NCBI GenBank assembly: GCA_964035545.1
Contig: OZ037766.1
Location: 6,128,722-6,192,721, forward strand
Length of the DNA stretch: 64,000 nt
DNA from: Bugula neritina
Taxonomy: Eukaryota > Animalia > Bryozoa
Direction of reading: 5' to 3'
This document shows, one piece after another, positions 2,539-14,974 of the stretch. Made by a program: the position numbers and the translations under genes. Position 1 is the stretch's first letter; every line of letters begins with the position of its first letter. Below the pieces are notes generated by a model, which did no database searches, had not been told where the DNA came from, and saw only the letters and a list, made by a program, of their open reading frames with translations.

Positions 2539-5500
2539 TTATGCGGGTTTCACTTGTAGGCGGATGCTTTGTTGATTGTCCAAACATTCTCTCAGCTTAT
2601 CTTCTGTCATCGTGAGTCTCTGCTCCAGTATAGAGACTGTCTGCAAAAATATAAATTATCTAGCTACTTTTTCTAATGAAAAATTTGTTAAATTATACAT
2701 CATATTAGCTCAAAAAGAATTAAATTGTATAGAAGACTGAGTAATATAAGGTTCTAAAGCAGAAAAGCCCTCTAGAAAGGAATGTGGCTTGAACAGAATA
2801 TTTCTCTATAGCTTTGATACTGTATAAAAATAGCATAGCTAGGTAAAAGTTCCCATCAGCTAGGTTTTTCCACAAAGAATGAAGCTAGCCAATTCATTGT
2901 AATGTAATTATCTCACAAGAGTGTACTATGGAAATAGGTATATAAAATTATACATTACTCTGTAATTTGAAAATATACAACTCGTGTTGTATGGAAAATC
3001 CTATTATAATGAAGCACTTAATGTAATGTCCTCAACTTAGTTCATCAAGTCAAGTACCAGTGTTACGTCAAGTACATGCGTTACAATATGGAGTACCTGT
3101 GTTATGTCAAGTACCTGTGTTATGATGTCAAGTACCTGTGTTATGATGTCAAGCTGTCCAACTATATGCTCGAGTGTTGCTGTCAGCTGATAAGGTATAT
3201 TCTGTGGCTCAGTTGGTTGTTTGAGTGGAGGAGACAGATCAGGTGTGCCAGTCTCTCCACGTCTAGCCCGGTCAGCGGAGGTCAGCTCAAGGTCACTAAG
3301 GGACGGTTGGTTAGGCACCCCATTGACTAATCTAGATGCACTTTGGACTCTAGGTGAGGAGTCACAATAGTCTCCAGCACCAGCAAACCTCTGTGATGAA
3401 GCAGAAGGCTACAGAATATTATAAGAGTTATCATCTCCTGTGACCCTTCAGATATGTAGATACACTAATTGCTAGGCATATGATTTCAGGCACACATTAA
3501 AATATGAACAAATCATGGCGATACTGGAGTCTAAACCTACACAGTGCCAACTCACTTAGCAGTTGGTCCACTAGACTACTGACTACCTTCAAACAAAGGC
3601 TGGATATAGAGCTATCTACACAGAACACCCATTAGCCTATACAATCTAATAGCCAGCTTTAGCTGTAATTGCATTCCACAAGCTACTACAGTTAGCACTG
3701 ATTCCACTAAAATATATGCTCTACACTGTTATACTTAGGACTTGTGTTTTAGTAAATTAAAGATCTACAACTCAAAGTAATAATCCTTGCATACAATGCT
3801 CACCTTTGGCCTAGAAAACAAAGAGGGGCCAACTTCCACCACACCTGGGTTATCATCCGTCATACTTCGCACCTGAGAATGGGCGTTTACCTAAAACAGT
3901 AGTGATGACTATTATTTAGCATGAGGTTTATTAATACCAACATTGTTATTTGAATGAAAATTTGCACTAATCTTGCTCTATATAAATTCATTTAGAAAAT
4001 TAACTGGTTTATTACAAGTAAAAGCCAACTAAAATAAAATTTTGTAACTTTATACATTTTAAACTAGTAAACACTACATAGCCAATATCTTGGAATAAGG
4101 ATAGATAACTCCATACCTTGACTGGACTAGACCTGGGCTCTGGACAGGTAGACAGTCTGGCTGATCTGGGTTCACTGGAAACTTTGTGAGCTTTCAGCAC
4201 TGCACTATAGTCTGTCTTGTCAAAGTTGGTCTTCCACACTAAACACTACAACACAGCGACATGCTGGACCAGCTGCACATTGCCACTAACAAAATTCACT
4301 TCATTCAACTGAACTAGTAATAAGTCACATCTATGTAAAGAAATGCACTCCACGCATTACATAGTAAATCATATTCACAGAGCAGCTACCTTCTCATCAG
4401 CTCCTCCAGTTGCAAAGTATTCGCCATTCCTTGAGAAGTTTGTCGCGGTGACCGAACCCTAAAAGTGTACACAGTTGAGTCACAGATTGTTCATATTCAA
4501 ACATTCAGTTATTACTACAATTTTAACTATAATAACTTCTAGTATAAATACATTTCTTAATATGAATACTCATACTGTCACTACAAGCGTTACAAGCTAC
4601 TTCAAACAGCCACTAGCAACTATCCCTACCAGAGCTCACTGTGCTTTATGCCACTGCAACATGCTTTATCAGAAGTAAATTAAAATTTGCTAGCTGCGCT
4701 AAGAAAGTTACCTTTACACATGTTACAGTATTACTAAGGCTCACGAACCTGGTGGCCATGCAAGGTATAGAAGAGTCGACCTTCTAGAAGATCAAACACT
4801 TTAATGGTGTTGTCATCTGACGCAGATATAAGAAAATTTCCAGAAGAATGAAACGCTACATCATTGACTGGAGCATTGTGGGCTACAAAAGATGCAACTT
4901 CGTCTCAAAATATTCTTAGCTGTATTTGAAATACATCAGATATATAATTAATTTGTACTGTTTTACATAATTTAGAAGATGGTTTGAAAGAAAATCAGAG
5001 AAGTGAAACGGAAATGAGAATAATTTGTGTTTCAACCATGTAATCAAAATGGATGAAATGTTTATGGTGACAGGAAACTGGCCAACTACTTCAACCAGAT
5101 CACCATCTGCTAGCACAAAGATACAGCTCCAGCTGGAGCATGCAGTACTCATTCATAAGATACTCTCTCTAACTGTCTAATGGAATGGAGACAGGCAAGG
5201 AAACACCTTTAATAGGCTAGAAGAATCACCTGTATAGTGTTGCAGCAATTTGTTGACTCGAATATCCCACACTTTGACTGTATTATCAGTGCTGCCGGCT
5301 GCCAGACACGTGCCACTAGGATGCCAGGCAACTTTATTCACATGTCTACAACACGACTACACCATTTATCCTTTCAATTAACAATAGAAAATTAATTTAT
5401 TTTTATTCTCTATCATTGCATTTAACAATATTATAAGAGAAATTAGAATGAGCCTAGAGCTGTCAGCATTCTACTAATGCCTAGCTACATCATAAGCTGA

Positions 5501-7190
5501 CTAGAGACATACCCCGCTGCCTCAAAGAAGGTGTGAACACACTCCTTGCTGTTCCTGTCCCACACCTTCACAGTTTTATCATCTGAACCAGAAACAAGAA
5601 GCCTGGAGTCTGGGGAGAATCTGGCTGAGCGCACCCAGTTCATGTGTTCATTCAGAGAAAACTGGAACTTCTGTCTGTGAGTGGACCAGACCTAGACAAT
5701 AACAAACCCATGGCTTAGAGAATACACAAACAGATGTCTTGCTTGAAAAACTTAGTCTGAAACATAAGAGAAGTTGACGTCATTGTCACTAATCCCACTA
5801 GTAATAAAAATGGAGAGCTGAATAGCTGAGTAACAAGCTAGATATCGTCTACATCAGACGGTGTATGTTTGCAGATTCACCTTAATAGTTTTATCATCAG
5901 ATGCTGTAGCCATGAACTGTCCATCGCAAGAGAAGTCCACACTCCTAACTGTAGCTGTGTGGGCCTTGAAAACCGTAGACTCTCCCTTACTGTAAACCAA
6001 ACAGCAATAAAACTGAGGCTTAGAATGTCCTCACACAGCGACACATGAGTTTTATAAGCTTGCTACATTTCCAACAATCAACAAGGAATACTTAGCAACA
6101 AACCGCATTCTCATTTCTAAAACCTAAACATGGTTACAGATTAATTCAACTTGGTGCACATCTCTTTTGAGATGGCTGATACAGTAAATAATTATATTCT
6201 GCTAATCATGATTTACTGTATTGAGAAAAAATATTAAATTAGATGACTTTTAGTGATGATAAAATAAAAAAACATACATTCACATGACACTTGCTTGCTT
6301 GAGGCTAGTAAAACTGGCATTAGGAAAAATAAATGCAACTAACTCACACGCTGGGTATCCACAGCCGAACAGTTTTATCTCTAGAACAAGAAGCTACCAG
6401 ATGTCCAGATGGTGAAAATCGAACGTCTGTTACAGCATCCTGCAAATGTATCTTTGGTAAAGGCGTTGAGTAAACAATTCTACAGCTTACATGTTTTGAT
6501 TGCAAATATACAAGTGCCTCTTCTCTAAGATTATTGTGAGTGACTTAATATATGCACACACGAGCGCACATACACACGTGCACACACACATACACGAAAG
6601 CAAACAACTACAATAATTAAAACAAAAAGTGAAACAAAAATTGAAACACAAAACAAACCTTGTGTCCAACAAATCGGTAAGCTCTGGTCTGTGGTTTGAA
6701 GTTCCAGATCATGAGACATGAATCCATGGATCCAGAAGCTAAATGCAGAGCACAAGTAAAGTTATTATCATAGTTTTGTAGAGCTTAACAAAAACCGGTA
6801 TGACGCGTGGTCATTGGAGATACAAGTAGCTACTATAATAACATAAATAAAAGAGTAAATTAGTCAAATATTTTTGGTCCAATTATATTATTATGCATAA
6901 CATTATACAGTTACAGTGATAAAATTTGTAAGTTTCGCATCAAAATTAGTTACTGCCCATATAATTACGTACCAAGTTGTTTCATATTGGGATTGAAATC
7001 CAAACTTGTTATTGTATCTCTGTGACCTTTGAAATTCCTTTCAAGAGTAGGGTCTTCCTGCATAACAAATATTCTAATGATCCATAAGCTATTATTTGTT
7101 ATTGAGAAAAAAGGGCAAAGATAATTTTATTTGATGCTTAAAAATCATAATGTTCGGATAAGTTAAAATACTTACTAAATTGGTCGTCAT
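2539..7190 (-). CDS. POC1: POC1 centriolar protein (WD40 propeller + C-terminal Poc1 coiled coil), ~489 aa, 13 coding exons
   Basis: Exons 7176-7190, 6973-7057, 6659-6738, 6348-6439, 5881-5989, 5513-5691, 5230-5345, 4749-4882, 4390-4458, 4117-4245, 3804-3890, 3136-3408, 2539-2640 give [19 protein letters not shown]...[36 protein letters not shown]...[37 protein letters not shown]; 1470 nt, all GT-AG. Confidence 0.96.
3050..3153 (-). repeat. 18-21-bp tandem repeat (CTTGACATCATAACACAGGTA) spanning the POC1 exon 12 donor
   Basis: Three near-perfect and two to three degenerate copies of exon end + GTA. Confidence 0.9.
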
Positions 7191-8222
7191 CTTTGCTTTA
7201 TATTTCCACCTGCGATATGCACAGAAAATTGTTTTACTGAAAATATAACAAACAAAAGAAATTAGAATATATATATAAAAAAATATCTAATTGATGTATT
7301 TGCTTGATTTAATAACAAAATTGCAAATAAAATCATTTTCACAGATACTAAATAAATGCTTAAAGACTCCAATTCAAAAAAGTAAAACATTTTTCGGTGG
7401 ATACAACAGGAATAATATTAAGTCAACAATACTGAAGTGCAATAAATACTGTTAATACTTGAGTTTTTAGCTTTGATTAATTAATACTTGCAGCACTTGG
7501 TATTTTAACTACTAAATGTGACAGTACTAGTAACAATAACATAACATATTTTAATTGAAATATTCAATATCATTATATAATTACAGCAGTATTTATGATC
7601 ATTTATTATAGTTGGTTGTAAATACTATAAATTAGTTTGGATAACAAACAGTCAGTTTAATATCAACATTTAGTTCTACTTAATACTGAATGTGACATTT
7701 AATTTAATATTGAGTGCATGATTTGTGTCATGATATTCTCATTCTAACTTTAGCAATAATAATCGTAATTATAATGTCATTCATACTGATACTTTGATAT
7801 GAAAATTAGTTGACAATATTAACCTGCTTGTTGTGAAAAGATCATTATTATCACTGGAATTGTAATTTAAATTTTTATATTTCTATATTTTAATCCCTTA
7901 TGTTGATCATTGATAATAATAGTAACTAAATTATTATAATCATGACGTAGAACCAAAATTTCTAGTTGAATCTAAACTTTACTTTGATGTTTGTGCTGGT
8001 CAGCGAGAATTCTTTATTTTCATTCCTAATTTTATCAAAACAATTTATCAATTATCAATAGGAATATGAACATGAATCATCATTATGATTACAAATAAAG
8101 GTATTTTTATTATTATAAACATGAACATGAAATTCAATTATCAACATAATTATATTTAAAATTAATTTTCAAAAGATCACTATCAGTATTGAGTTATATT
8201 CAGTTATCATCATAACAACTAT

Positions 8223-8436
8223 TGGAATGTAATGCGGTTTATAGTCTTTAGCAGATAACCTACAAGCTAACCTGAGGCGATTGGCTAACTGCCTTACAAG
8301 CATTCGGATTCCCTACCGGATTTCCTACCAGCTTGTACGGCTTGGATATTGGCTATTGCGAGAGTGAAAGTAAAAGTAAAGACTGCACGAGGGAACTCTT
8401 ACGCAGACTGTCGAGTAAGTAGGACCTTACATTTCA
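8223..8436 (+). repeat. 5' LTR (214 bp)
   Basis: Direct repeat of 14021-14234 with 8 mismatches by eye; TGGAATGTAA...TTACATTTCA. Confidence 0.95.
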
Positions 8437-8455
8437 TGGCGCAGTCGGCAGGATT
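8437..8455 (+). other. Primer-binding site complementary to the 3' end of tRNA-Ser
   Basis: TGGCGCAGTCGGCAGGATT = reverse complement of AATCCTGCCGACTGCG-CCA, a metazoan tRNA-Ser type 3' end; directly abuts the LTR. Confidence 0.85.
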
Positions 8456-8466
8456 GTAGACAGTCA

Positions 8467-8612
8467 ACAGTGGAGAAGGAGTGAATAGTGGAGAAGAAAT
8501 AAAGAGTGGAGCAGAATCAAATAGTGGAGTTTGGAGAAGAATCAAATAGTGGAGAAGAGTGAATAGTGGAGCAGAATCAAATAATAAAGGGGAGACAAAC
8601 AGTGGTCGTGGA
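8467..8612 (+). repeat. Purine-rich ~18-bp tandem repeats (AGTGGAGMAGAATCAAAT-like) in the element leader
   Basis: About 7 units beginning AGTGGAG. Confidence 0.8.
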
Positions 8613-8652
8613 GAGTAACTATAAAAGCTTATTAAGTTATTTGAGATACATT

Positions 8653-11600
8653 TGTGACCAGTCGCGACAAAACCGGGGATGTGGCGGCGTTTATAAAGTG
8701 TAGTAAATGAAGGTTTAATTTGGAAATACTTAAATTTAAAATTAATTTCCAGTTTTTAGATTTTGAATTTTTCTAATACAAAAAAGTCCAAGGATTTCAA
8801 AAATCACACTTTCGTAAGCATTTGATGATTCCTTCAGCTCTAAAATTGCATTTAAAGTTGGTAACTAAGGCATTCAATTTTTTAAATGATGAAAAAATTG
8901 CGAAGTTATCAAGTAAAGAAAGAAGACAATTTTAGTCATTTTCATAGTTCGAGATTCTGCAGATTTATTTTTTATCAAATGGATTTAGCTTACACCTCTT
9001 TCTTCGCATTGTCAGAAGCATCGTATTTAAAATCGAAGGCTAGTTTTAGTTTTTCGTCGTGCTCCATCCAAAGTTAGCTTTTAAGTTACTGAGAGGTTTT
9101 GCCCTTTGGTGATAAATGCTAAACTTAATCTTTATCTTTAGCGTTCAAGCTTGAAAATCACAACAATACAGGTAATTATACTCAAAACCATCATTTACGC
9201 TACTAACTTAGAATTGTTGCCAGGATTATTTGTAGTTATCTTTTTATTAATATCCATACTGATACTGATAATATCACTAGGAGTATGTCTATTCTATACT
9301 AATAGTAATAACTATTTAAATGACTCTCACTATGACTCACAGTTTGAGGTACGGTTACTCATAATGATAATCATTCATGATTTACTGATACTGGTATTTG
9401 GCAGTAAAACCAAATGTAGCTCATTAATATTAATAGTATAACTTAAGTAATGATTAATAATTAAATTCACTATTTGAGTCTGACTCTGAGTTTCGCCTTA
9501 CTTACTTGACTTACTTGAAGATGCAATCACGTTAGACCACTAGATTAGCGTAAGCACTTGATACTCATACTGATAGTATTATATTTATTAATTTATTCTA
9601 TAGTTGATATTTAAATTTACATTGGAATTACTCTTAGTCTTAGTAACTTTTAGCCTCTGTCTTAGATTTTGTCAATACAGTTACTGATTACTATTACTAT
9701 TAACATTAGGCCTACCAGTCAAACTACCGGTTTCTTTTGTGATTTTTAAATTAGCTCAAAGTTTGATTTGAAATATAATGATAAAATCTTTATCACATTA
9801 TGCAGGCTTACAGTTACTGTCAAAACTCAATTGATAATCCTATTTATATTGATAAAAGCATCACCTATAACCAAAATTAAATGGTAAATGTGATTAAATG
9901 TAAATGAGTATAATGATGAAATATTAATGCGAGTTCATGGTGATTCTATAGTTGACTGACTTAGTTCTTCAGTAAGTTACTTTTAGTCTTATTTAGTGAG
10001 TAGTAACACTAACTGAATGCATAAATAGTCTAAGCTTTTTAATTTTATTATAAAGGATGAGCAAAAATTTATTCATATTTTAAAATAATTTATTGAATTC
10101 AAATCGATTTTATAGTAAATGTCTGTAATAGATTCAGTTGCACTTAGCTAGCTTTTTTACTCAATTAAATGCTTGAGTGGTTAATATAGTTATCGAAAGA
10201 CATTGCTTCAAAGTTGCCAATTGCAGATATGCTAGATATTCAAGTGCATAATGTGTAATTTTACTGATAATACTGTGTTAATGTAGAATAATCCGATATT
10301 CTGTACATTTTAGAAAGTGGACTTATGAGAGCATTAGAGTGAAGACTTATACCTACACAACTCTACTACCTATCAATCTAACACTTCTAATGTAGACACT
10401 CTGAATTTTGGCTTGCAAGGTTATGGCTTCTGCTTATTTCATTCATAAAAAGGTTTGCAGTCTTTTAATGATGTGCTTGAAAATTTTCAACAAATTTTTT
10501 AATTTAAATTGTTCTGTTTAATTCAATAAATTTAAATGTTGATAAAATGCAGGATGACAATTAACTGCTGCTATAGTAGTACCACAAGAGTGTTTAACCA
10601 ACTAAATTTTTATAATATAACTGCGTATAGTTTCTAATCAAACTACTGTTTTCTTTTGTTATTTAAAAAAGTCAACATTATACTTGCAGCTCTGGAATAG
10701 ACAATAGATAGGTAGATTGGCAGGATGGATGTCAAGTAACAGCATCTATAATTGCTAGAAAATCAGCTGATGATAGTGATGAAGCTTTTGCCACATACAT
10801 GATGTTATGTGTCCATACTCCGTAAACTCATATTATGAAGACCAAGGAAGTAGAAAGATGAAAAGTGCCTTTTTTGCAAAAACCGTAGAAGCTACCTAAT
10901 TTACTTTTCTTGATTAGAGTTAATTCAAGCATAATGATTGTATCCAGGCTGGATTTTTTTACTGCATTTAATTAGTTTTTTAAAATAATGTATTTGATTT
11001 TTTAAATGTGAATATTAATGCCTAATAAAACTCAAACGTTCTAATAGCTAATTTTATGTTTATATTTTCAACATCAATTGCTAAATTTAGTTGCCGTTAG
11101 AGATTATAAAGATATTTATGAATGAATCTCGAATGATCTCATAATAGTCAAATAATTTTCTCATAAGTGTTCTACTCATTAAGCAATAACTATGAAACAG
11201 CACAGCTCAATAGCTGCAGTTTGATATATTACACAATATATTAGAGGAGAGGAAGGTATTCAATGTATAACAGGAAGCAGCTGCCATTTTGTTTTATATG
11301 ACTTCCTGCTGACTTGGATGCCTAATTTAAATATCTCAACACACAAACTTGCTGAAACATCCTCTTCTTTGCTGGAATTGTTAAACCTTTCAATCATTAA
11401 ACAAAGTAAAAAGCAAATTGACAAATAAATTAGACAAAAAGTTTGGCGGCCATATTTGACCTAATTTTATGTTGAGGCAGCATGAAATTTAGTTTAACAG
11501 AAAGCCCAAACTTTCACAATTATTTCGGTACCAAATTTGTCACCATTCCTATTATACAAAGACCCGTTGCTAAGGCTTGTAAATTGTAAACAAATAATTC

Positions 11601-11827
11601 TCAACTTATTCTAGAGTTGCCAACTTTAAATGCGATTTTCTCGAAACAGTAATTTAGAAATTCTAAAAACGTTAAAGTTTTTAAATACTAATATCTCGAG
11701 TTCTATTTATGCTAGAGACTTCAAATAAAGTGCAAAATGTTTGAAAAAGTCTGCTCTATCACTTTATAGTAATAACTAGGTTTTCAACATTTTATATACA
11801 TCTCTTGTTTTGTGGTGCCAGGTCACA
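8653..11827. mobile_element. Nested non-coding DNA-transposon-like insertion with ~30-bp imperfect TIRs
   Basis: Left end TGTGACCAGTCGCGACAAAACCGGGGATGT vs reverse complement of right end TGTGACCTGGCACCACAAAACAAGAGATGT (23/30); ACATTTGTG at both junctions; GTGGAG-rich leader resumes right after 11827. Confidence 0.65.
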
Positions 11828-12056
11828 TTTGTGGAGTTTAGTTTGTGTTATCAGTAGAGTAAGAGTAAGACTAAGAGTTAGTGGAGTGACAGTGAAATAT
11901 TAATATTATTATTTATAATTCGGTTAGAGTATTAGATTTGATAAATTCAAATTTAATATTAGGTTTAAGGATTAACAGGGTTATTAGTATAATTAAGCTT
12001 TCTGGTAGTGATAAATAAAATTTTAAATTTTATATCACGCTCACATTCAGATCATA

Positions 12057-13535
12057 ATGGCAACTAACACTAGGTTCACCGACCTCAATCGGTTTCCTAA
12101 GTTAGTTTTGAGCTCCGATAATCAGAGTGATTGTTTTAAGAAATGGTTGGTAAAATACAACCTGTCAGTTCGATTAGCAACCCTTGAAATGGGTACTGAA
12201 ATGCTGTCCAATATTGCAGTAAATAGATTTAGAGGTGAAGCTAAGTTTCTAGCTTTGCTCAATGCCATTGGAGATGAGGGTATTGATGTGTTACAATCTT
12301 CAGGATTTGATCTTGAATGGAATGATGATAATGCTCATAATGATGCTTTAAATTTGTTGAAAGGTCACTATGAGAAAACAGAAAATGTTCATGTGGCTTG
12401 GGTTAAGGCAGCAAATTTGTCTCAAACATGCGGCGAAGATGAGTTAGAGTATTTGCTACGTGGCGAGAAACATAGTAGAAATTTAGGATTTGTTGAAGGG
12501 GCTAATGTGGAAGACCTTAGACAAAGGTTTGCTATTAGTATGGCAGTAGTTGGTTTAAGAGATGAATATCTTAGAAGACAACTTATGCTTAATGAAAATA
12601 TCACTTGGAAAGCGTTGTCTGATATTTTGAAGACTAGGAATATTGCTAGAGAATCTGCTGCAATGGTTTCTGAGGTTAGATCTAGTAGTTCTAATTTGAA
12701 TAATAACTTTGCTAACATAGCTGAAGTTAGAACTAAGTCTGATAGAGTAACGGACAGAAGGTCATCTTACTATGATAATGATAGACATAAAGGTAGATAT
12801 AGTTCTAGAGATAGTAGTCGAGATTATTCTCGCCACAAGTCTCCAGACTATAGGAGTAGACATAGAGCTAGCAGTAATAGTAGTAGTAGCAGTTCAGACA
12901 GTTTATGTTATGTTTGTCATAAACCTGAGCATGTTGCTAGGAATTGTCTGAAAATAAGATGTTATGCATGTGGAAAACATGCCCACATAGCAAGAGACTG
13001 TAGAATGCGTAGGTCTTACAAGGACAAAGATTACTCTAGTAGAAGTAACTATAGAAGTCAAAGGAGTAGTAGCTCAGATAGAGAATGGTCAGTGGATAGT
13101 AACGATAGTTCTTCCTGGAGATCACCTAGAACTAGAGCTGTCAGCTCTAGTAAGGTTAGATTTATTGATAGTGAACCATACGATAGAGCTGAAACATGGA
13201 AACAGAATCTTAGTGTTAATGATAGAAATATTGAGTTTGTTTTAGATACTGGTGCAGATGTGTCTACAATTACTGAAGACACAAGTAAAACATTAGCACT
13301 TAAGCTTCACGAAAGTGATCGAGTTTTGAAAAGTGCCGACAACTCCCAGCTCTCAGTGTTAGGCAAAGCTGAGGTTGTTTTAAGAAGCAAGTTTAAGAAA
13401 ACAGTAACTAACCTGTATGTTATTAAAGGTTCTAAGTCTAATATACTAGGTTTGACGGAATTGAAGAACCATAGTCTGTTAACTGTAGTTAGCACTGAGG
13501 CTCAGTTGGTCTCTTGGAGAAATACATTGAAGTAG
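12057..13535 (+). CDS. gag: Gag-protease polyprotein (492 aa): capsid-like region, RS-rich tracts, two CCHC zinc knuckles, retropepsin
   Basis: CYVCHKPEHVARNC and CYACGKHAHIARDC (CX2CX4HX4C); FVLDTGADVSTI and NILG aspartic-protease motifs; uninterrupted ORF inside the LTRs. Confidence 0.92.
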   Translation: MATNTRFTDLNRFPKLVLSSDNQSDCFKKWLVKYNLSVRLATLEMGTEMLSNIAVNRFRGEAKFLALLNAIGDEGIDVLQSSGFDLEWNDDNAHNDALNLLKGHYEKTENVHVAWVKAANLSQTCGEDELEYLLRGEKHSRNLGFVEGANVEDLRQRFAISMAVVGLRDEYLRRQLMLNENITWKALSDILKTRNIARESAAMVSEVRSSSSNLNNNFANIAEVRTKSDRVTDRRSSYYDNDRHKGRYSSRDSSRDYSRHKSPDYRSRHRASSNSSSSSSDSLCYVCHKPEHVARNCLKIRCYACGKHAHIARDCRMRRSYKDKDYSSRSNYRSQRSSSSDREWSVDSNDSSSWRSPRTRAVSSSKVRFIDSEPYDRAETWKQNLSVNDRNIEFVLDTGADVSTITEDTSKTLALKLHESDRVLKSADNSQLSVLGKAEVVLRSKFKKTVTNLYVIKGSKSNILGLTELKNHSLLTVVSTEAQLVSWRNTLK

Positions 13536-13625
13536 CAGTAGTGACTTCTAGCACTTAGTTATAGCTAGGGAAATTACCAGTGGGCGACCTAGGTCAAACA
13601 CCTGGTAAAGCGGATGCACGGAAGT

Positions 13626-13781
13626 CCACCTTGGTGGCATGGTATTAGCCCACCCTGGGGGTGCTAAGGATGATCACTTCGGTGATCAAGTTCACGACCA
13701 CTCTGGTGGTCAGGTTATTGTCCACTCCGGTGGTTAGACTAAAGTCCACTTTGGTGGCAATTTTGGGAACCACTTTGGTGG
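13626..13781 (+). repeat. Array of seven 12-nt palindromic cores (CCAC-YYYG-GTGG) at exact 24-nt period with variable 12-nt spacers
   Basis: Cores start at 13626, 13650, 13674, 13698, 13722, 13746, 13770. Confidence 0.9.
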
Positions 13782-13872
13782 TAAACCAGACTGTGTACTG
13801 TACATAGAGGTTGGTATTTTGTGTTATCAGGCTGATTGGTATTTTGGTGTTACTGCTCAGCCCAACAAACCA

Positions 13873-14020
13873 CTCAGTTCCATGTGTTACTTTATACTGC
13901 TAAATTCCTCAAAGGGGAGCATGGAATATTATGTACTCAATTCCATGTTTTGCTTTCTATTAAATCCCCAAAAGGGGAGCATGGAATATTAAGTGGTTCA
14001 TCTCTATAAAAGGGAGGGCA
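13873..14020 (+). repeat. ~60-bp tandem duplication of PPT + LTR start, then the functional PPT
   Basis: AAAGGGGAGCATGGAATATT at 13911-13930 and 13971-13990; AAAAGGGAGGGCA|TGGAATATAA at 14008-14030. Confidence 0.85.
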
Positions 14021-14234
14021 TGGAATATAATGCGGTTTATAGTCTTTAGCAGATAACCTACAAGCTAACCTGAGGCGATTGGCTAACTGCCTTACAAGCA
14101 TTCGGATTCCCTACCGGATTTCCTACCAGCTTGTACGGCTTGGATATTGGCTATTGTGAGAGTGAAAGTAAAAGTAAAGACTGCACGAGGGGACTCTAAC
14201 ACAGACTGTCGAGTAAGTCGAACGTTACATTTCA
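14021..14234 (+). repeat. 3' LTR (214 bp)
   Basis: Direct repeat of 8223-8436, preceded by PPT and followed by TSD CTAT. Confidence 0.95.
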
Positions 14235-14974
14235 CTATAATCATGAATATTATTATTTAAATTTATATTTATTATGTTATTACTTATTAATTACTCAAAG
14301 TCAATGGTAATGTTATTAGTATTACTAATAGTAATAGTAATACAGTACGATTGTATTACTAATACTATTAGTATTATTATTATTATTGCTATTTCTAATG
14401 TAATTACATGTAGTGATGTACTCATACTGATAGAGATACTGTATAATCAATAATGTACACCAATTTGCATACTGTCACTGGTACTGTATAGTAATTTACT
14501 AAAACTAAGAGTTACTGTTACTGTTAGTCACTTAGTGTTGGACTTAGAGTTAGTATTACTGTCACTCACTTATAGTTATTGTTATAAGTATAAGTGATAA
14601 AATGAAACATTGACACAATTTTAATTTAAAAAATAAACTGGCTTTACTCTAACGTTTTAGCTAAAACTTGTACAGCATCAGCGTGAGACTAACTAACTAA
14701 CTAACTAAGTGAACATGAACTTGAAGTTTAAGTTGAAGCTGAACATCAATCAAAATTAAAGTTGTCAGTGGCTACTAGTACTAGTACTTTGAAATTTAAA
14801 AACGTATTGTATTTGTAGCCACGTCCCTATTGGTGAAAGCAATTAAAAGTGTTGATGTAGCGGAAATGAATATAATCATTATCATTATGATTATTTATAT
14901 CAGTAGGAGTATACACGTAGTAATACTAATAGTAATAGTAATAGTCAAATATGATGCAGAAAAATTAAAAAGTT

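Follow-up and report, generated by a model that had tools for sequence, protein, structure and literature searches.

Phased inverted repeats in a gag-protease-only Ty3/gypsy element of Bugula neritina: a remnant of ORF3 and candidate cis-acting nucleic-acid signal

The stretch of Bugula neritina DNA analysed here (the window; 64,000 nt) carries on its forward strand a gag-protease-only deletion derivative of an autonomous Ty3/gypsy family of the same bryozoan. We refer to the derivative, which has 13 copies in the genome, as family A and to the autonomous family as family B. The window element comprises about 2.85 kb besides a 3.18-kb foreign insertion in its leader. It is bounded by two 214-nt LTRs with TG...CA ends (5' LTR, 8223-8436; 3' LTR, 14021-14234) that form a direct repeat of 96% identity; their termini are similar to those of the family B LTRs. 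Directly after the 5' LTR lies the primer binding site TGGCGCAGTCGGCAGGAT (8437-8454), which differs at one position from that of the autonomous element and which we take to be a putative match to a tRNA-Ser-type 3' end. The insertion (8650-11828) is a nested, unrelated non-coding repeat with no ORF longer than 96 aa, and at least 40 copies of it occur elsewhere in the genome at 90-97% identity, none of them adjoining other copies of the family. The gag-protease ORF (12057-13535; 492 aa) encodes two CCHC knuckles and a DTGA aspartic protease (Pfam zf-CCHC, Asp_protease_2 and gag-asp_proteas), and its identity to the autonomous gag-protease is 59-64% at the protein level and 75-79% at the DNA level.

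Downstream of this ORF are a conserved 44-nt segment that we call SL0 (13570-13613), the array of inverted repeats with which this report is concerned (13626-13781) and a degenerate remnant of the ORF3 tail (13782-13871) that is barely alignable to the autonomous element. These are followed by two 60-nt tandem units (13872-13991; Tandem Repeats Finder score 168) bearing a motif that resembles a polypurine tract plus LTR start (aaaggggagcatggaatatta), as judged against the true junction at 14008-14030. The polypurine tract itself, aaaagggaggg (14008-14018), lies 2 nt upstream of the 3' LTR and matches the polypurine region of the autonomous element. The LTR pair, primer binding site, polypurine tract, CCHC Gag and aspartic protease place the window element in Ty3/gypsy (Metaviridae); pol, with the domain order PR-RT-RNaseH-integrase, is absent from it and present in the autonomous partner. 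Two RNA-library contigs, one of 1840 nt and one of 566 nt from an oligo-dT metatranscriptome, run unspliced from gag/protease through the array, which is not proof of transcription, and no splice joint near the array was seen in the assembled RNA-library contigs.

The array consists of seven 12-nt cores, each with 4-bp arms around a 4-nt centre, that start at 13626, 13650, 13674, 13698, 13722, 13746 and 13770. When the sequence was re-read, the exact 24-nt step and the 12-nt spacers agreed with those listed in a sequence-only reading of this DNA. The cores are CCAC-CTTG-GTGG, CCAC-CCTG-GGGG, TCAC-TTCG-GTGA, CCAC-TCTG-GTGG, CCAC-TCCG-GTGG, CCAC-TTTG-GTGG and CCAC-TTTG-GTGG. Two successive cores (CCACN4GTGG-N12-CCACN4GTGG) are found three times in the window as against 0.00 across 100 shuffles, and 63+63 times in the genome (216 Mb) as against 1+1 for the reversed control; all of the 100 matches listed, out of 126, are this array in families A and B. 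A wider search of metagenomes for three phased CCACN4GTGG cores gave more than 120 matches, and in all 80 loci that were read the neighbouring spacers were identical at 7-12 of 12 positions. These loci are therefore plain 24-nt tandem repeats on unrelated, mostly bacterial contigs and are irrelevant to the array, in which identity among units at spacer positions is 0.1-0.67, mostly below 0.5, and little beyond the cores is common to all.

Tandem Repeats Finder reports only 2.5 copies in the array (13698-13757) because the recent duplication involves units 4 and 5 alone. This 24-nt tandem duplication (13698-13745) is specific to family A; a single unit is found in two family A copies (L011 and L012), in all autonomous copies and in an RNA-library contig. 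Unit number thus varies, being seven in 11 family A copies, six in the other two and six in family B. Units 1, 5 and 6 have 4-bp stems, unit 7 a 5-bp stem and units 3 and 4 6-bp stems, and unit 2 has a bulged stem of about 9 bp. Three lesions are private to the window copy: one nucleotide is deleted after 13619, unit 2 reads GGGG and a TAG stands at 13735-13737. At these sites the remaining 12 copies of family A have the extra A, GGTGG and CAG, respectively. The loops had been described as always YYYG, which is true of family A, where the loops other than UUCG are CUUG, CCUG, UCUG, UCCG and UUUG, and not of family B, which has CUCA/CUUA, UCUA and UCAG. The likeness to c(UNCG)g tetraloops similarly fits unit 3 (UUCG) and, in some copies, unit 6, and none of the other units.

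Where did the array come from? Family B has the layout LTR-PBS-gag-pol-ORF3-PPT-LTR, with a pol of 1055 aa in the C3 copy (L025 joined to L016), and the table of called genes lists RVT_1, RT_RNaseH, Integrase_H2C2 and rve for homologues that are 57-72% identical to it. The array sequence is present in seven genomic copies (85-87% identical) of this autonomous relative, within an ORF of 468-475 aa that overlaps the end of the integrase ORF. This ORF3 (468 aa) encodes three CCHC knuckles, a coiled coil and a tail predicted to be disordered (residues 330-461, pLDDT below 50), and it is intact in two copies with an omega of 0.26-0.31. In its frame the array reads as six His-x-Gly-Gly octapeptide units (...KLPVGDLGQTPGK...VHLGG-KPLA-HPGG...) with the motif (V/A/D)H-x-G-G, located in the C-terminal tail predicted to be disordered. 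As an octapeptide repeat it has an open frame in the autonomous copies, conserved H and G-G, and an array omega of 0.49.

An origin of the array in ORF3 is thus close to certain. Since the same sequence lies in frame inside ORF3 of family B, it is neither a replacement for pol, as had been proposed, nor a CRISPR-like array; it is what remains of ORF3 after an internal deletion. Identity between the families falls from 85% in the array to about 50-52% directly after the last unit, no homology to ORF3 was evident beyond about 30 nt on the upstream side of SL0, and the array and the 44-nt segment just upstream of it are the only recognisable pieces of ORF3 in family A. The xHxGGxxx frame that the sequence-only reading set aside is therefore the true reading frame of the parent's gene, and the TAG that had been held against coding is the mutation private to the window copy. 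The histidine codon is indeed always CAC, as had been noted, but CAC belongs to the stem.

ORF3 matches no Pfam family besides zf-CCHC. A gene of this type accompanies pol in relatives at 57-72% pol identity on marine metagenome contigs (L206-L211), and the full-length examples (L207, L208 and L210) share the three CCHC knuckles and the coiled coil. Word-based protein searches with ORF3 found a Bugula neritina protein only, and those with ORF3 of L207 found only itself; a HMMER search yielded distant ORF3s that lack the repeat, besides partial sequences from the same families of Bugula. Six diverged ORF3 copies (L061, L063, L068, L070, L073 and L074) were considered as comparators and discarded because they end before the array or have it deleted.

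Comparison of copies indicates, on statistical grounds, that the bases of the inverted repeats, synonymous sites included, have been under purifying selection in the replicating lineages, with loops, spacers and even amino acids left to drift. Between real copies of families A and B, differences are seen at 0 of 48 stem sites, 7-10 of 24 loop sites and 13 of 60 spacer sites (Fisher p 2e-5 to 7e-5), and the cores are clearly more conserved than the spacers. The non-stem sites taken together differ at 20-23 of 84, or about 24-27%, which is similar to the 21-25% seen in gag; the patch is therefore not a recent recombinant. At third codon positions 0 of 18 stem sites differ as against 8-10 of 26 others (p 0.003-0.014), and all of the third-position tests rest on these 18 stem sites (p 0.003-0.05). 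Among 21 copies, variants common to two or more occur at 1 of 48 stem sites versus 28 of 84 other sites (p 6.5e-4), the single shared stem variant being a C-to-U change that preserves a wobble pair. Private variants fall at 0.23 per site in stems and 0.18 elsewhere.

The codons tell much the same story. Third-position identity among units is 0.9 in the stems and 0.3 in the rest of the array. Histidine is CAC in six of six cores as against 24 CAC to 26 CAT elsewhere in the element, and the Gly/Ser codon ends in T in six of six cores, whereas elsewhere 37% of glycine codons are GGT. The residue before His varies (V, A, D, T, N) while its third base stays C, or U with A as its partner; at a loop base a Gly-to-Ser change is tolerated, and the synonymous T of that same codon is never altered. 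For SL0 and the array dS is 0-0.20, 2-3-fold lower than in the rest of ORF3 (0.23-0.59), and dN of the array equals that of the remaining ORF3, so that only dS is low. Five of the eight stem bases are codon positions 1 or 2 of the conserved His and Gly, and the signal is to that extent confounded with the peptide. Taken together, conservation of the paired bases exceeds the requirements of the protein, and an additional signal in the RNA or DNA of the element is therefore probable. We consider it likely that selection acts on the arms at the nucleotide level, and the suspicion of such constraint in the sequence-only reading was well founded.

It is possible that the repeat matters only as a peptide, for example as a metal-binding or flexible tail of ORF3, and that the window copy is a functionless relic. 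The palindromes would then be a by-product of codons of the form C-CAC-NNN-GGT-GG, inherited as units were duplicated, and units 4 and 5 show that units do arise in this way. In the autonomous element this frame is open and shows purifying selection, its most conserved residues are H and G-G, H-x-G-[DE] is kept at another spacing in a distant relative, which suggests that the motif matters more than the phase, and H-x-G-G is also written CAC...GGTGG in unrelated metagenomic Gly-rich genes. We nevertheless regard both the relic and the by-product as unlikely. Stem positions that are synonymous do not change, whereas third positions elsewhere are saturated among units and differ between families, and the base before His and the T of the Gly/Ser codon outlast changes of amino acid. 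Moreover, the stems reach into neighbouring codons (units 2, 3 and 4, and 7 bp in the distant relative L207), the array does not differ from the rest of ORF3 in dN and is low in dS, and the tail is predicted to be disordered.

If the arms are paired in RNA, hairpins should be evident in folding and in related sequences. Single units folded alone give -5 to -10 kcal/mol, and the whole module folds modestly better than shuffles (z -2.2 and -1.3); in context, the possibility of pairing between units leaves many of them with a low pairing probability. The compensatory C-G to U-A change noted earlier in unit 3 is present, as one pair. Covariation is slight: one of six pairs has changed on both sides, in a single old event, three of the four core pairs never vary, and the score lies above all but 6 of 500 shuffles. 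In L207, H-x-G-E codons carry hairpins of 5-7 bp (CUCAC-UUCG-GUGAG and AGUUCAC-CAGG-GUGAACU), in which the outer pair is U-A instead of C-G. Their spacing is 27 and 33 nt, and exact 24-nt phase, which had been read as a constraint, is thus absent from the one distant relative with such hairpins. Four further ORF3-bearing relatives have no such hairpins; the module is therefore lineage-specific and not a requirement across the clade. Rfam gave no match on 13400-14100 and three sub-threshold chance matches elsewhere in 8000-14400, and a tRNA scan returned nothing relevant.

SL0 belongs to the same module. Its 44 nt are homologous to ORF3 codons K-L-P-V-G-D-L-G-Q-T-P-G-K-A and include a 35-nt bulged stem-loop (13574-13608) that is predicted in both families. 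Only 1 of 44 nt differs between families A and B, which turns an A-U pair into G.U, and the segment is identical in L212 and L214. Its dS is 0-0.15, as against 0.23-0.59 elsewhere in ORF3, and A-to-G changes in its 5' arm (B relative to A; L020) keep plus-strand G.U pairs. The purine-rich leader, with its AGTGGAG repeat, shares reverse-complement 6-8-mers with the module at the level of shuffles in family A (p 0.09-0.21), and such matches are absent in family B.

On balance we favour the view that the array is an ORF3 remnant, coding for H-x-G-G in the parent, that would also serve as a nucleic-acid signal acting in cis and superimposed on the coding sequence. The protein's His/Gly repeat may largely be the shadow of that signal. 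The likely site of action would be the plus-strand genomic RNA, in which a row of small hairpins would expose pyrimidine-rich, G-ending loops. Zinc-knuckle proteins of the element itself, either the Gag nucleocapsid or the ORF3 protein, may bind several hairpins at once, and this multivalent binding may mark the RNA for packaging or handling. Recognition of this kind would explain exact retention of the module by a parasite that depends on its partner's reverse transcriptase and integrase. Such retention is seen in one non-autonomous family, and most of the divergence between A and B may predate loss of ORF3 in the ancestors of A, so that conservation in a non-coding context is a weak argument. 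A specific role in packaging or recognition is put forward tentatively, from sequence comparison. More speculative still is a retroelement recognition signal of an undescribed type, in which phased mini-hairpins, with H-x-G-G merely their translation, have been hijacked by a gag-protease-only parasite.

Given selection on the nucleotides, we lean towards RNA rather than DNA as its object. An alternative is that the array acts as double-stranded DNA, with one 12-bp dyad core per 24 bp serving as a site for a dimeric host or element protein, similar to an enhancer, silencer or insulator. Perfect dyad symmetry, conserved half-sites and a free centre are typical of dimer sites, perfect inverted repeats suit a duplex binding site equally well, and the conservation tests are blind to the difference between DNA and RNA. 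SL0 also contains the perfect palindrome GACCTAGGTC, and the palindromic motif clusters of Sireviruses have been read as cis-acting transcriptional elements (PMC2829016). Arm length, however, ranges from 4 to about 9 bp with extensions specific to individual units, which fits hairpins better than one common protein site. Furthermore, arm changes in otherwise intact copies keep plus-strand G.U pairs and break DNA symmetry, the hairpins of L207 are alike in fold while their half-sites differ beyond CAC/GTG, and no factor is known. We judge a DNA element to be improbable.

Two other accounts fare worse. Quasi-palindrome correction is a well-documented source of mutation in bacteria and yeast, and reverse transcriptases often switch templates, so the palindromes might owe their perfection to intrastrand template switching by a reverse transcriptase or DNA polymerase, with no selection involved. 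Arms of four bases are very short for this, private variants disrupt stems at a normal rate and stand uncorrected in resident copies, and the low dS of SL0 and retention of the module in a deletion derivative would be left unexplained; we find this account very hard to credit. The proposed likeness to a miniature CRISPR array, or to a phased small-RNA array with processed 24-nt units and informative spacers, is superficial and can scarcely be entertained: conserved cores, variable 12-nt spacers and a 24-nt phase invite it, but CRISPR arrays belong to prokaryotes, lie next to cas genes and combine identical repeats of 23-50 nt with unrelated, acquired spacers, whereas here the cores are of 12 nt, the spacers are orthologous, inherited between families and slowly drifting, the sequence is translated in the parent retrotransposon, the host is an animal, Cas genes are absent, the phase is not conserved in L207, RNA-library contigs are continuous across the array and Rfam has no match.

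A puzzling repeat-spacer array thus becomes an example, open to experiment, of codes that overlap in a mobile element, in which the same 150-200 nt encode a disordered protein tail and, as the frozen synonymous sites suggest, a nucleic-acid signal. The existence of a gag-protease-only derivative that keeps just this piece of its autonomous partner hints at where the cis requirement for mobilisation may lie, and in Bryozoa the cis-acting signals of Ty3/gypsy elements have hardly been studied. The analysis further delineates an uncharacterised family of ORF3 genes, marked by a coiled coil and three CCHC knuckles, across a clade of gypsy-type elements that come chiefly from marine metagenome assemblies. 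A practical consequence for genome scans is that hairpin arrays of defective elements should be compared with intact relatives before they are labelled non-coding. If the more speculative reading, that of an undescribed type of recognition signal, is correct, the array would be a clean natural case of an RNA structural repeat dictating a peptide repeat, and a packaging or recognition signal would lie at the 3' end of a Ty3/gypsy genome instead of in the leader.

Cis-acting RNA inside the coding regions of retroelements has precedents in the HIV-1 RRE, which lies in env, and in the packaging and dimerisation sequences in GAG of Ty1. Like these, the Bugula module is a structured stretch of several hairpins that is embedded in an ORF and falls in the 3' half of the genomic RNA, with suppressed synonymous change and retention in a derivative that needs its partner's proteins. 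It differs in having no sequence or Rfam similarity to them, in its tiny repeated units (4-9 bp) and in being lineage-specific, and its role is predicted from sequence. Retroviral packaging signals that bind nucleocapsid include the GGNG tetraloops of HIV-1 SL2 and SL3 and the Y-Y-Y-G/UCUG sites of MoMLV. The Bugula array likewise offers several small hairpins with exposed pyrimidine-rich, G-ending tetranucleotides, and CCHC knuckles are present in both Gag and ORF3. Unlike those signals, it is 3' and within a gene rather than in the 5' leader, the loops of family B are not all YYYG, and nucleocapsid binding is a candidate property. With the prion octarepeat (PHGGGWGQ) the ORF3 tail shares an eight-residue period, His followed by Gly-Gly and a disordered setting; there is no homology or Pfam match, residues besides H and G are not conserved, and the constraint is on nucleotides.

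There is also a likeness in design to the palindromic repeated-motif clusters of Sireviruses, in which symmetrical subunits are conserved and the intervening bases vary, and which occur in LTRs and at the start of the env-like gene (Bousios et al. 2010, PMC2829016). In those plant Ty1/copia elements the motifs are marked by a CGG-CCG signature, mostly precede the TATA box of the LTR and have been read as transcription-factor sites (PMC2829016). Both are clusters of short dyad-symmetric sequences in an LTR retrotransposon, and some Sirevirus copies reach the env-like third gene. The Bugula cores, in contrast, are CCAC/GTGG, lie wholly in ORF3 of an animal Ty3/gypsy element, recur at exactly 24 nt and share the frame of a peptide repeat, so that the array is not a cluster of the Sirevirus type and the likeness is of design only. 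Finally, LTR retrotransposons have captured third ORFs of several types, including env-like, GDSL esterase and DEDDy exonuclease genes (Rodriguez, Kenefick and Arkhipova 2017, PMC5408684). ORF3 of family B resembles these captured genes in being a third ORF after pol in an invertebrate Ty3/gypsy-like element, and it differs from them in encoding a zinc-knuckle and coiled-coil protein.

The array at 13626-13781 consists of seven 12-nt YCAC-NNNN-GTGR cores, with one start per 24 nt, and the 12-nt spacers between them share little similarity. A two-core pattern has three matches in the window against none in 100 shuffles, and across the 216-Mb assembly it gives 63 + 63 matches against 1 + 1 for a reversed control. 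The regular spacing and dissimilar spacers recognized by the sequence-only reading are real. All matches listed (100 of 126) are this array in two Ty3/gypsy families: family A, a gag-protease-only derivative that includes the window element, and family B, which is autonomous. Tandem Repeats Finder reports only units 4-5, because these two units alone are a recent duplication. Family A comprises 13 genomic copies with 88-97% identity across the array region, and unit number does vary among them, 11 copies having seven units and two having six. Private to the window copy, and absent in 12 of 12 sister copies, are three lesions: the unit 2 G in GGGGG, the TAG at 13735-13737 and a 1-nt deletion after 13619.

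The window element is bounded by 214-nt LTRs (8223-8436 and 14021-14234; 96% identical, TG...CA), with a primer binding site (PBS) directly after the 5' LTR and a polypurine tract (PPT) 2 nt upstream of the 3' LTR. Its sole long ORF (12057-13535) encodes a Gag protein, bearing two CCHC knuckles, in fusion with an aspartic protease (gag-PR). Since 8650-11828 is a foreign nested copy of a 3.18-kb repeat, unrelated to the element and with no ORF above 96 aa, the element proper is ~2.85 kb and consists of LTR, leader, gag-PR, a 480-nt 3' region with the array, and LTR. The nested repeat, possibly a non-autonomous element of large size, has at least 40 further copies at 90-97% identity spread across all chromosomes. 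The leader contains very little C (33 in 440 nt) and just 3' of the PBS (8461-8605) carries ~7-8 tandem copies of a purine-rich motif, (A/T)AGTGGAG(A/C)AG, at spacings that alternate between 17-18 and 25 nt; complementarity of this motif to the 3' hairpin arms (CCACT) shows no excess over chance. Two 60-nt tandem units at 13872-13991 each resemble the PPT joined to the beginning of the LTR (aaaggggagcatggaatatta), so the element has three such junctions in series; the units could either provide alternative sites for plus-strand priming or have arisen by slippage.

Where did the array originate? Seven additional genomic loci match it at 85-87% identity in a different context, inside a 468-475-aa ORF that overlaps the end of the integrase ORF. 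Extending two of these loci yielded a complete family B element with the order LTR (204 bp, 98.5-99.5% identical within one copy), PBS (as in family A with one difference), gag, pol (PR-RT-RNaseH-integrase), a third gene (ORF3), PPT, LTR. The gag-PR regions of the two families share 59-64% protein and 75-79% DNA identity, and their LTR ends, PBS and PPT correspond. Family A is thus a relative of family B in which an internal deletion removed RT, RNase H, integrase and most of ORF3. The xHxGG frame, at first dismissed, is the true ORF3 frame in family B and reads ...EKLPVGDLGQTPGKAAMRE-VHLGG-KPLA-HPGG-ANND-HLSD-QVHD-HSSG-QVKV-HSGG-ILGT-HSGG-EPTEGQGD... across the array. Thus, the array is present in the autonomous relative and, rather than being a non-coding replacement of pol as originally proposed, derives from ORF3 and is translated in the parent element. 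In one autonomous copy (L025, G000:C3:16844000-16853999) the leader, in the interval from LTR/PBS to gag, holds a 947-aa ORF (~3004-5844), probably a nested insertion, whose sequence resembles a LINE-type (non-LTR) reverse-transcriptase ORF. Contigs assembled from RNA-type libraries, which give no strand, ends or small RNAs and are not by themselves proof of transcription, span the family A element unspliced across the array: a 1840-nt contig covers 12124-13958, a 566-nt oligo-dT metatranscriptome contig covers 13307-13870, and a contig from another run has the six-unit form. A loose contig end has family B ORF3-context sequence adjoining the array.

ORF3 is a real gene, since it is intact in two copies, has an omega of 0.26-0.31 between lineages, and encodes three CCHC knuckles and a long, confidently predicted helix (residues 263-325); from residue 330 onward, repeats included, the protein is predicted to be disordered. 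A word search of the protein database returned a hypothetical Bugula neritina protein as the sole relative. Members of the family (L014:458-1861 from B. neritina; L207:5444-6622, L208:4399-5613, L210:5078-6358 and L211:4565-5884 from metagenomes) combine a Gly/Arg-rich N-terminus with three invariant CCHC knuckles, a long coiled coil and a disordered, acidic tail, and match zf-CCHC and no further Pfam family. The family is uncharacterised and belongs to a gypsy-type clade known mostly from marine metagenome assemblies. Many 300-350-aa ORFs in the B. neritina genome also show ~30% identity to its knuckle and coiled-coil part.

Relatives of pol occur on metagenome contigs, several of them marine, at 57-72% identity, and six (L206-L211) have an ORF3-type gene after pol, truncated in L206 and split in two in L209. 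The three knuckles and the arrangement with a coiled coil recur in L207, L208 and L210; L211 gives a poorer alignment. On the 7.1-kb contig with the closest foreign pol (L206, 70% identical), bacterial-type domain genes (AMP-binding, FAD-dependent halogenase-like) follow the retroelement at 5284-7140, which reflects either chimeric assembly or an unusual junction. Only one of these relatives, L207, whose pol is 62% identical, carries His-x-Gly motifs in its ORF3 tail. They are spaced 27 and 33 nt apart, and two of the three are perfect hairpins, CUCAC-UUCG-GUGAG and AGUUCAC-CAGG-GUGAACU, whose outer pair is U-A and not C-G. L207 adds independent support for hairpins on His-x-Gly codons, and the comparison shows the exact 24-nt phase and unit number to be an expansion in the Bugula lineage. 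Hairpins of this kind are absent from the other four relatives, so the structure is not needed by every member of the clade.

One possibility is that the array is purely a peptide repeat, left as a relic in family A. This is unlikely, as the arm nucleotides are selected beyond His and Gly. In three independent pairs of real copies from families A and B, 0 of 48 stem sites differ, compared with 7-10 of 24 loop sites and 13 of 60 spacer sites (stem contrast, Fisher p 2e-5 to 7e-5). Divergence at non-stem array sites is ~24-27% (20-23 of 84), equal to that of gag, which rules out a recent recombinant patch; the unusual feature of the array is its frozen arms. In the ORF3 frame, third codon positions account for three of the eight stem bases (the one preceding His, the C of CAC and the T of GGT/AGT), and at third positions 0 of 18 stem sites differ versus 8-10 of 26 others (p 0.003-0.014). 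Among units of one copy, identity is 0.9 at the three stem third positions and 0.3 (saturated) at others. Outside the array, the element's His codons are CAC:CAT 24:26 and 37% of Gly codons are GGT; at the cores, His is CAC in 6/6 and the Gly/Ser codon ends in T in 6/6. The residue preceding His varies by unit (V, A, D, D, V, T/N) and its last base is a constant C, except in unit 3, where a U is matched by a partner A, the one compensatory pair. The last loop base changes GGT to AGT (Gly-to-Ser) in two family B units, with the synonymous third base of that codon invariant.

In a McDonald-Kreitman-like comparison, 21 copies (three of them additional variants, drawn from a public B. neritina assembly and one metagenome contig) were used to separate private variants, which mostly reflect post-insertion decay (0.23 per stem site, 0.18 per other site), from variants common to at least two copies, which have passed through replication. 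The latter occur at 1 of 48 stem sites versus 28 of 84 others (p 6.5e-4), and the one in a stem, a parallel C-to-U change, retains a G.U pair; at third positions only, stems have 5 private and 1 shared, versus 5 and 12 elsewhere (p 0.05). Between family B and two diverged lineages, dS is 0.10-0.20 for the array, 0-0.15 for the 19 codons preceding it and 0.23-0.59 across the remaining ORF3, while dN is roughly equal throughout, array included. Taken together, these results show purifying selection on the arm nucleotides themselves, added to any selection on His and Gly, and bear out the nucleotide-level constraint suspected from the sequence.

The array belongs to a ~210-nt module that the non-autonomous derivative has kept. 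Its upstream part, 13570-13613 (44 nt), is near-invariant in all lineages, identical in two further variants, and predicted to fold as a 35-nt bulged stem-loop in both families, whose sole difference there turns an A-U pair into G.U. No homology between family A and ORF3 was found more than ~30 nt upstream of the stem-loop, and A/B identity drops to ~50% right after the last unit; family A retains the module and little other ORF3 sequence. A single ORF3 copy (L074, G000:C2:24723533-24723888) has residues 76-423, module included, deleted, and such copies were not seen to form a family; this one case would fit a need for the module in propagation. A 4247-nt contig of JGI metagenome 3300003318 holds two partial ORF3 3' ends with arrays in inverted orientation (L213/L214), one truncated exactly at the first unit.

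An alternative reading is that the array is a row of double-stranded DNA binding sites, since a dimeric DNA-binding protein would also select perfect inverted repeats. We consider this improbable, to about the same degree as the peptide repeat. The few arm changes that keep G.U pairs on the plus strand and the unit-specific arm extensions (6 bp in units 3 and 4, ~9 bp with a bulge in unit 2, against 4 bp) lean towards RNA, though not decisively. Covariation among 13 units (one copy from each family) is thin, with three core pairs invariant and one compensatory, and the folding advantage of the whole module over shuffles is modest (z -2.2 and -1.3). Predicted in-context pairing probabilities of single units range from 0.01 to 1.0 because all units are mutually complementary, and Rfam gave no family match. 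Mutational maintenance of the palindromes is very improbable, and neither the UNCG-type nor the CRISPR-like framing held up, a CRISPR-like or small-RNA array deserving almost no credence.

We infer that the module acts in cis as a signal, most likely as a row of RNA hairpins that the zinc-knuckle proteins of the element would bind. Recognition of the hairpins would serve packaging or RNA handling, and the gag-protease-only parasite would require the module for mobilization by its autonomous partner.

Plant Sireviruses have clusters of palindromic repeated motifs with conserved half-sites that were read as transcriptional elements (PMC2829016), and the inverted repeats of the array can be likened to them. 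Such palindromic motif clusters of LTR elements, overlapping cis-elements in retroelement genes, and non-autonomous partners that keep cis signals are already known kinds. What is new is the design, in which phased mini-hairpins are embedded in a peptide repeat, its location in an uncharacterised zinc-knuckle ORF3, and the host phylum, Bryozoa.
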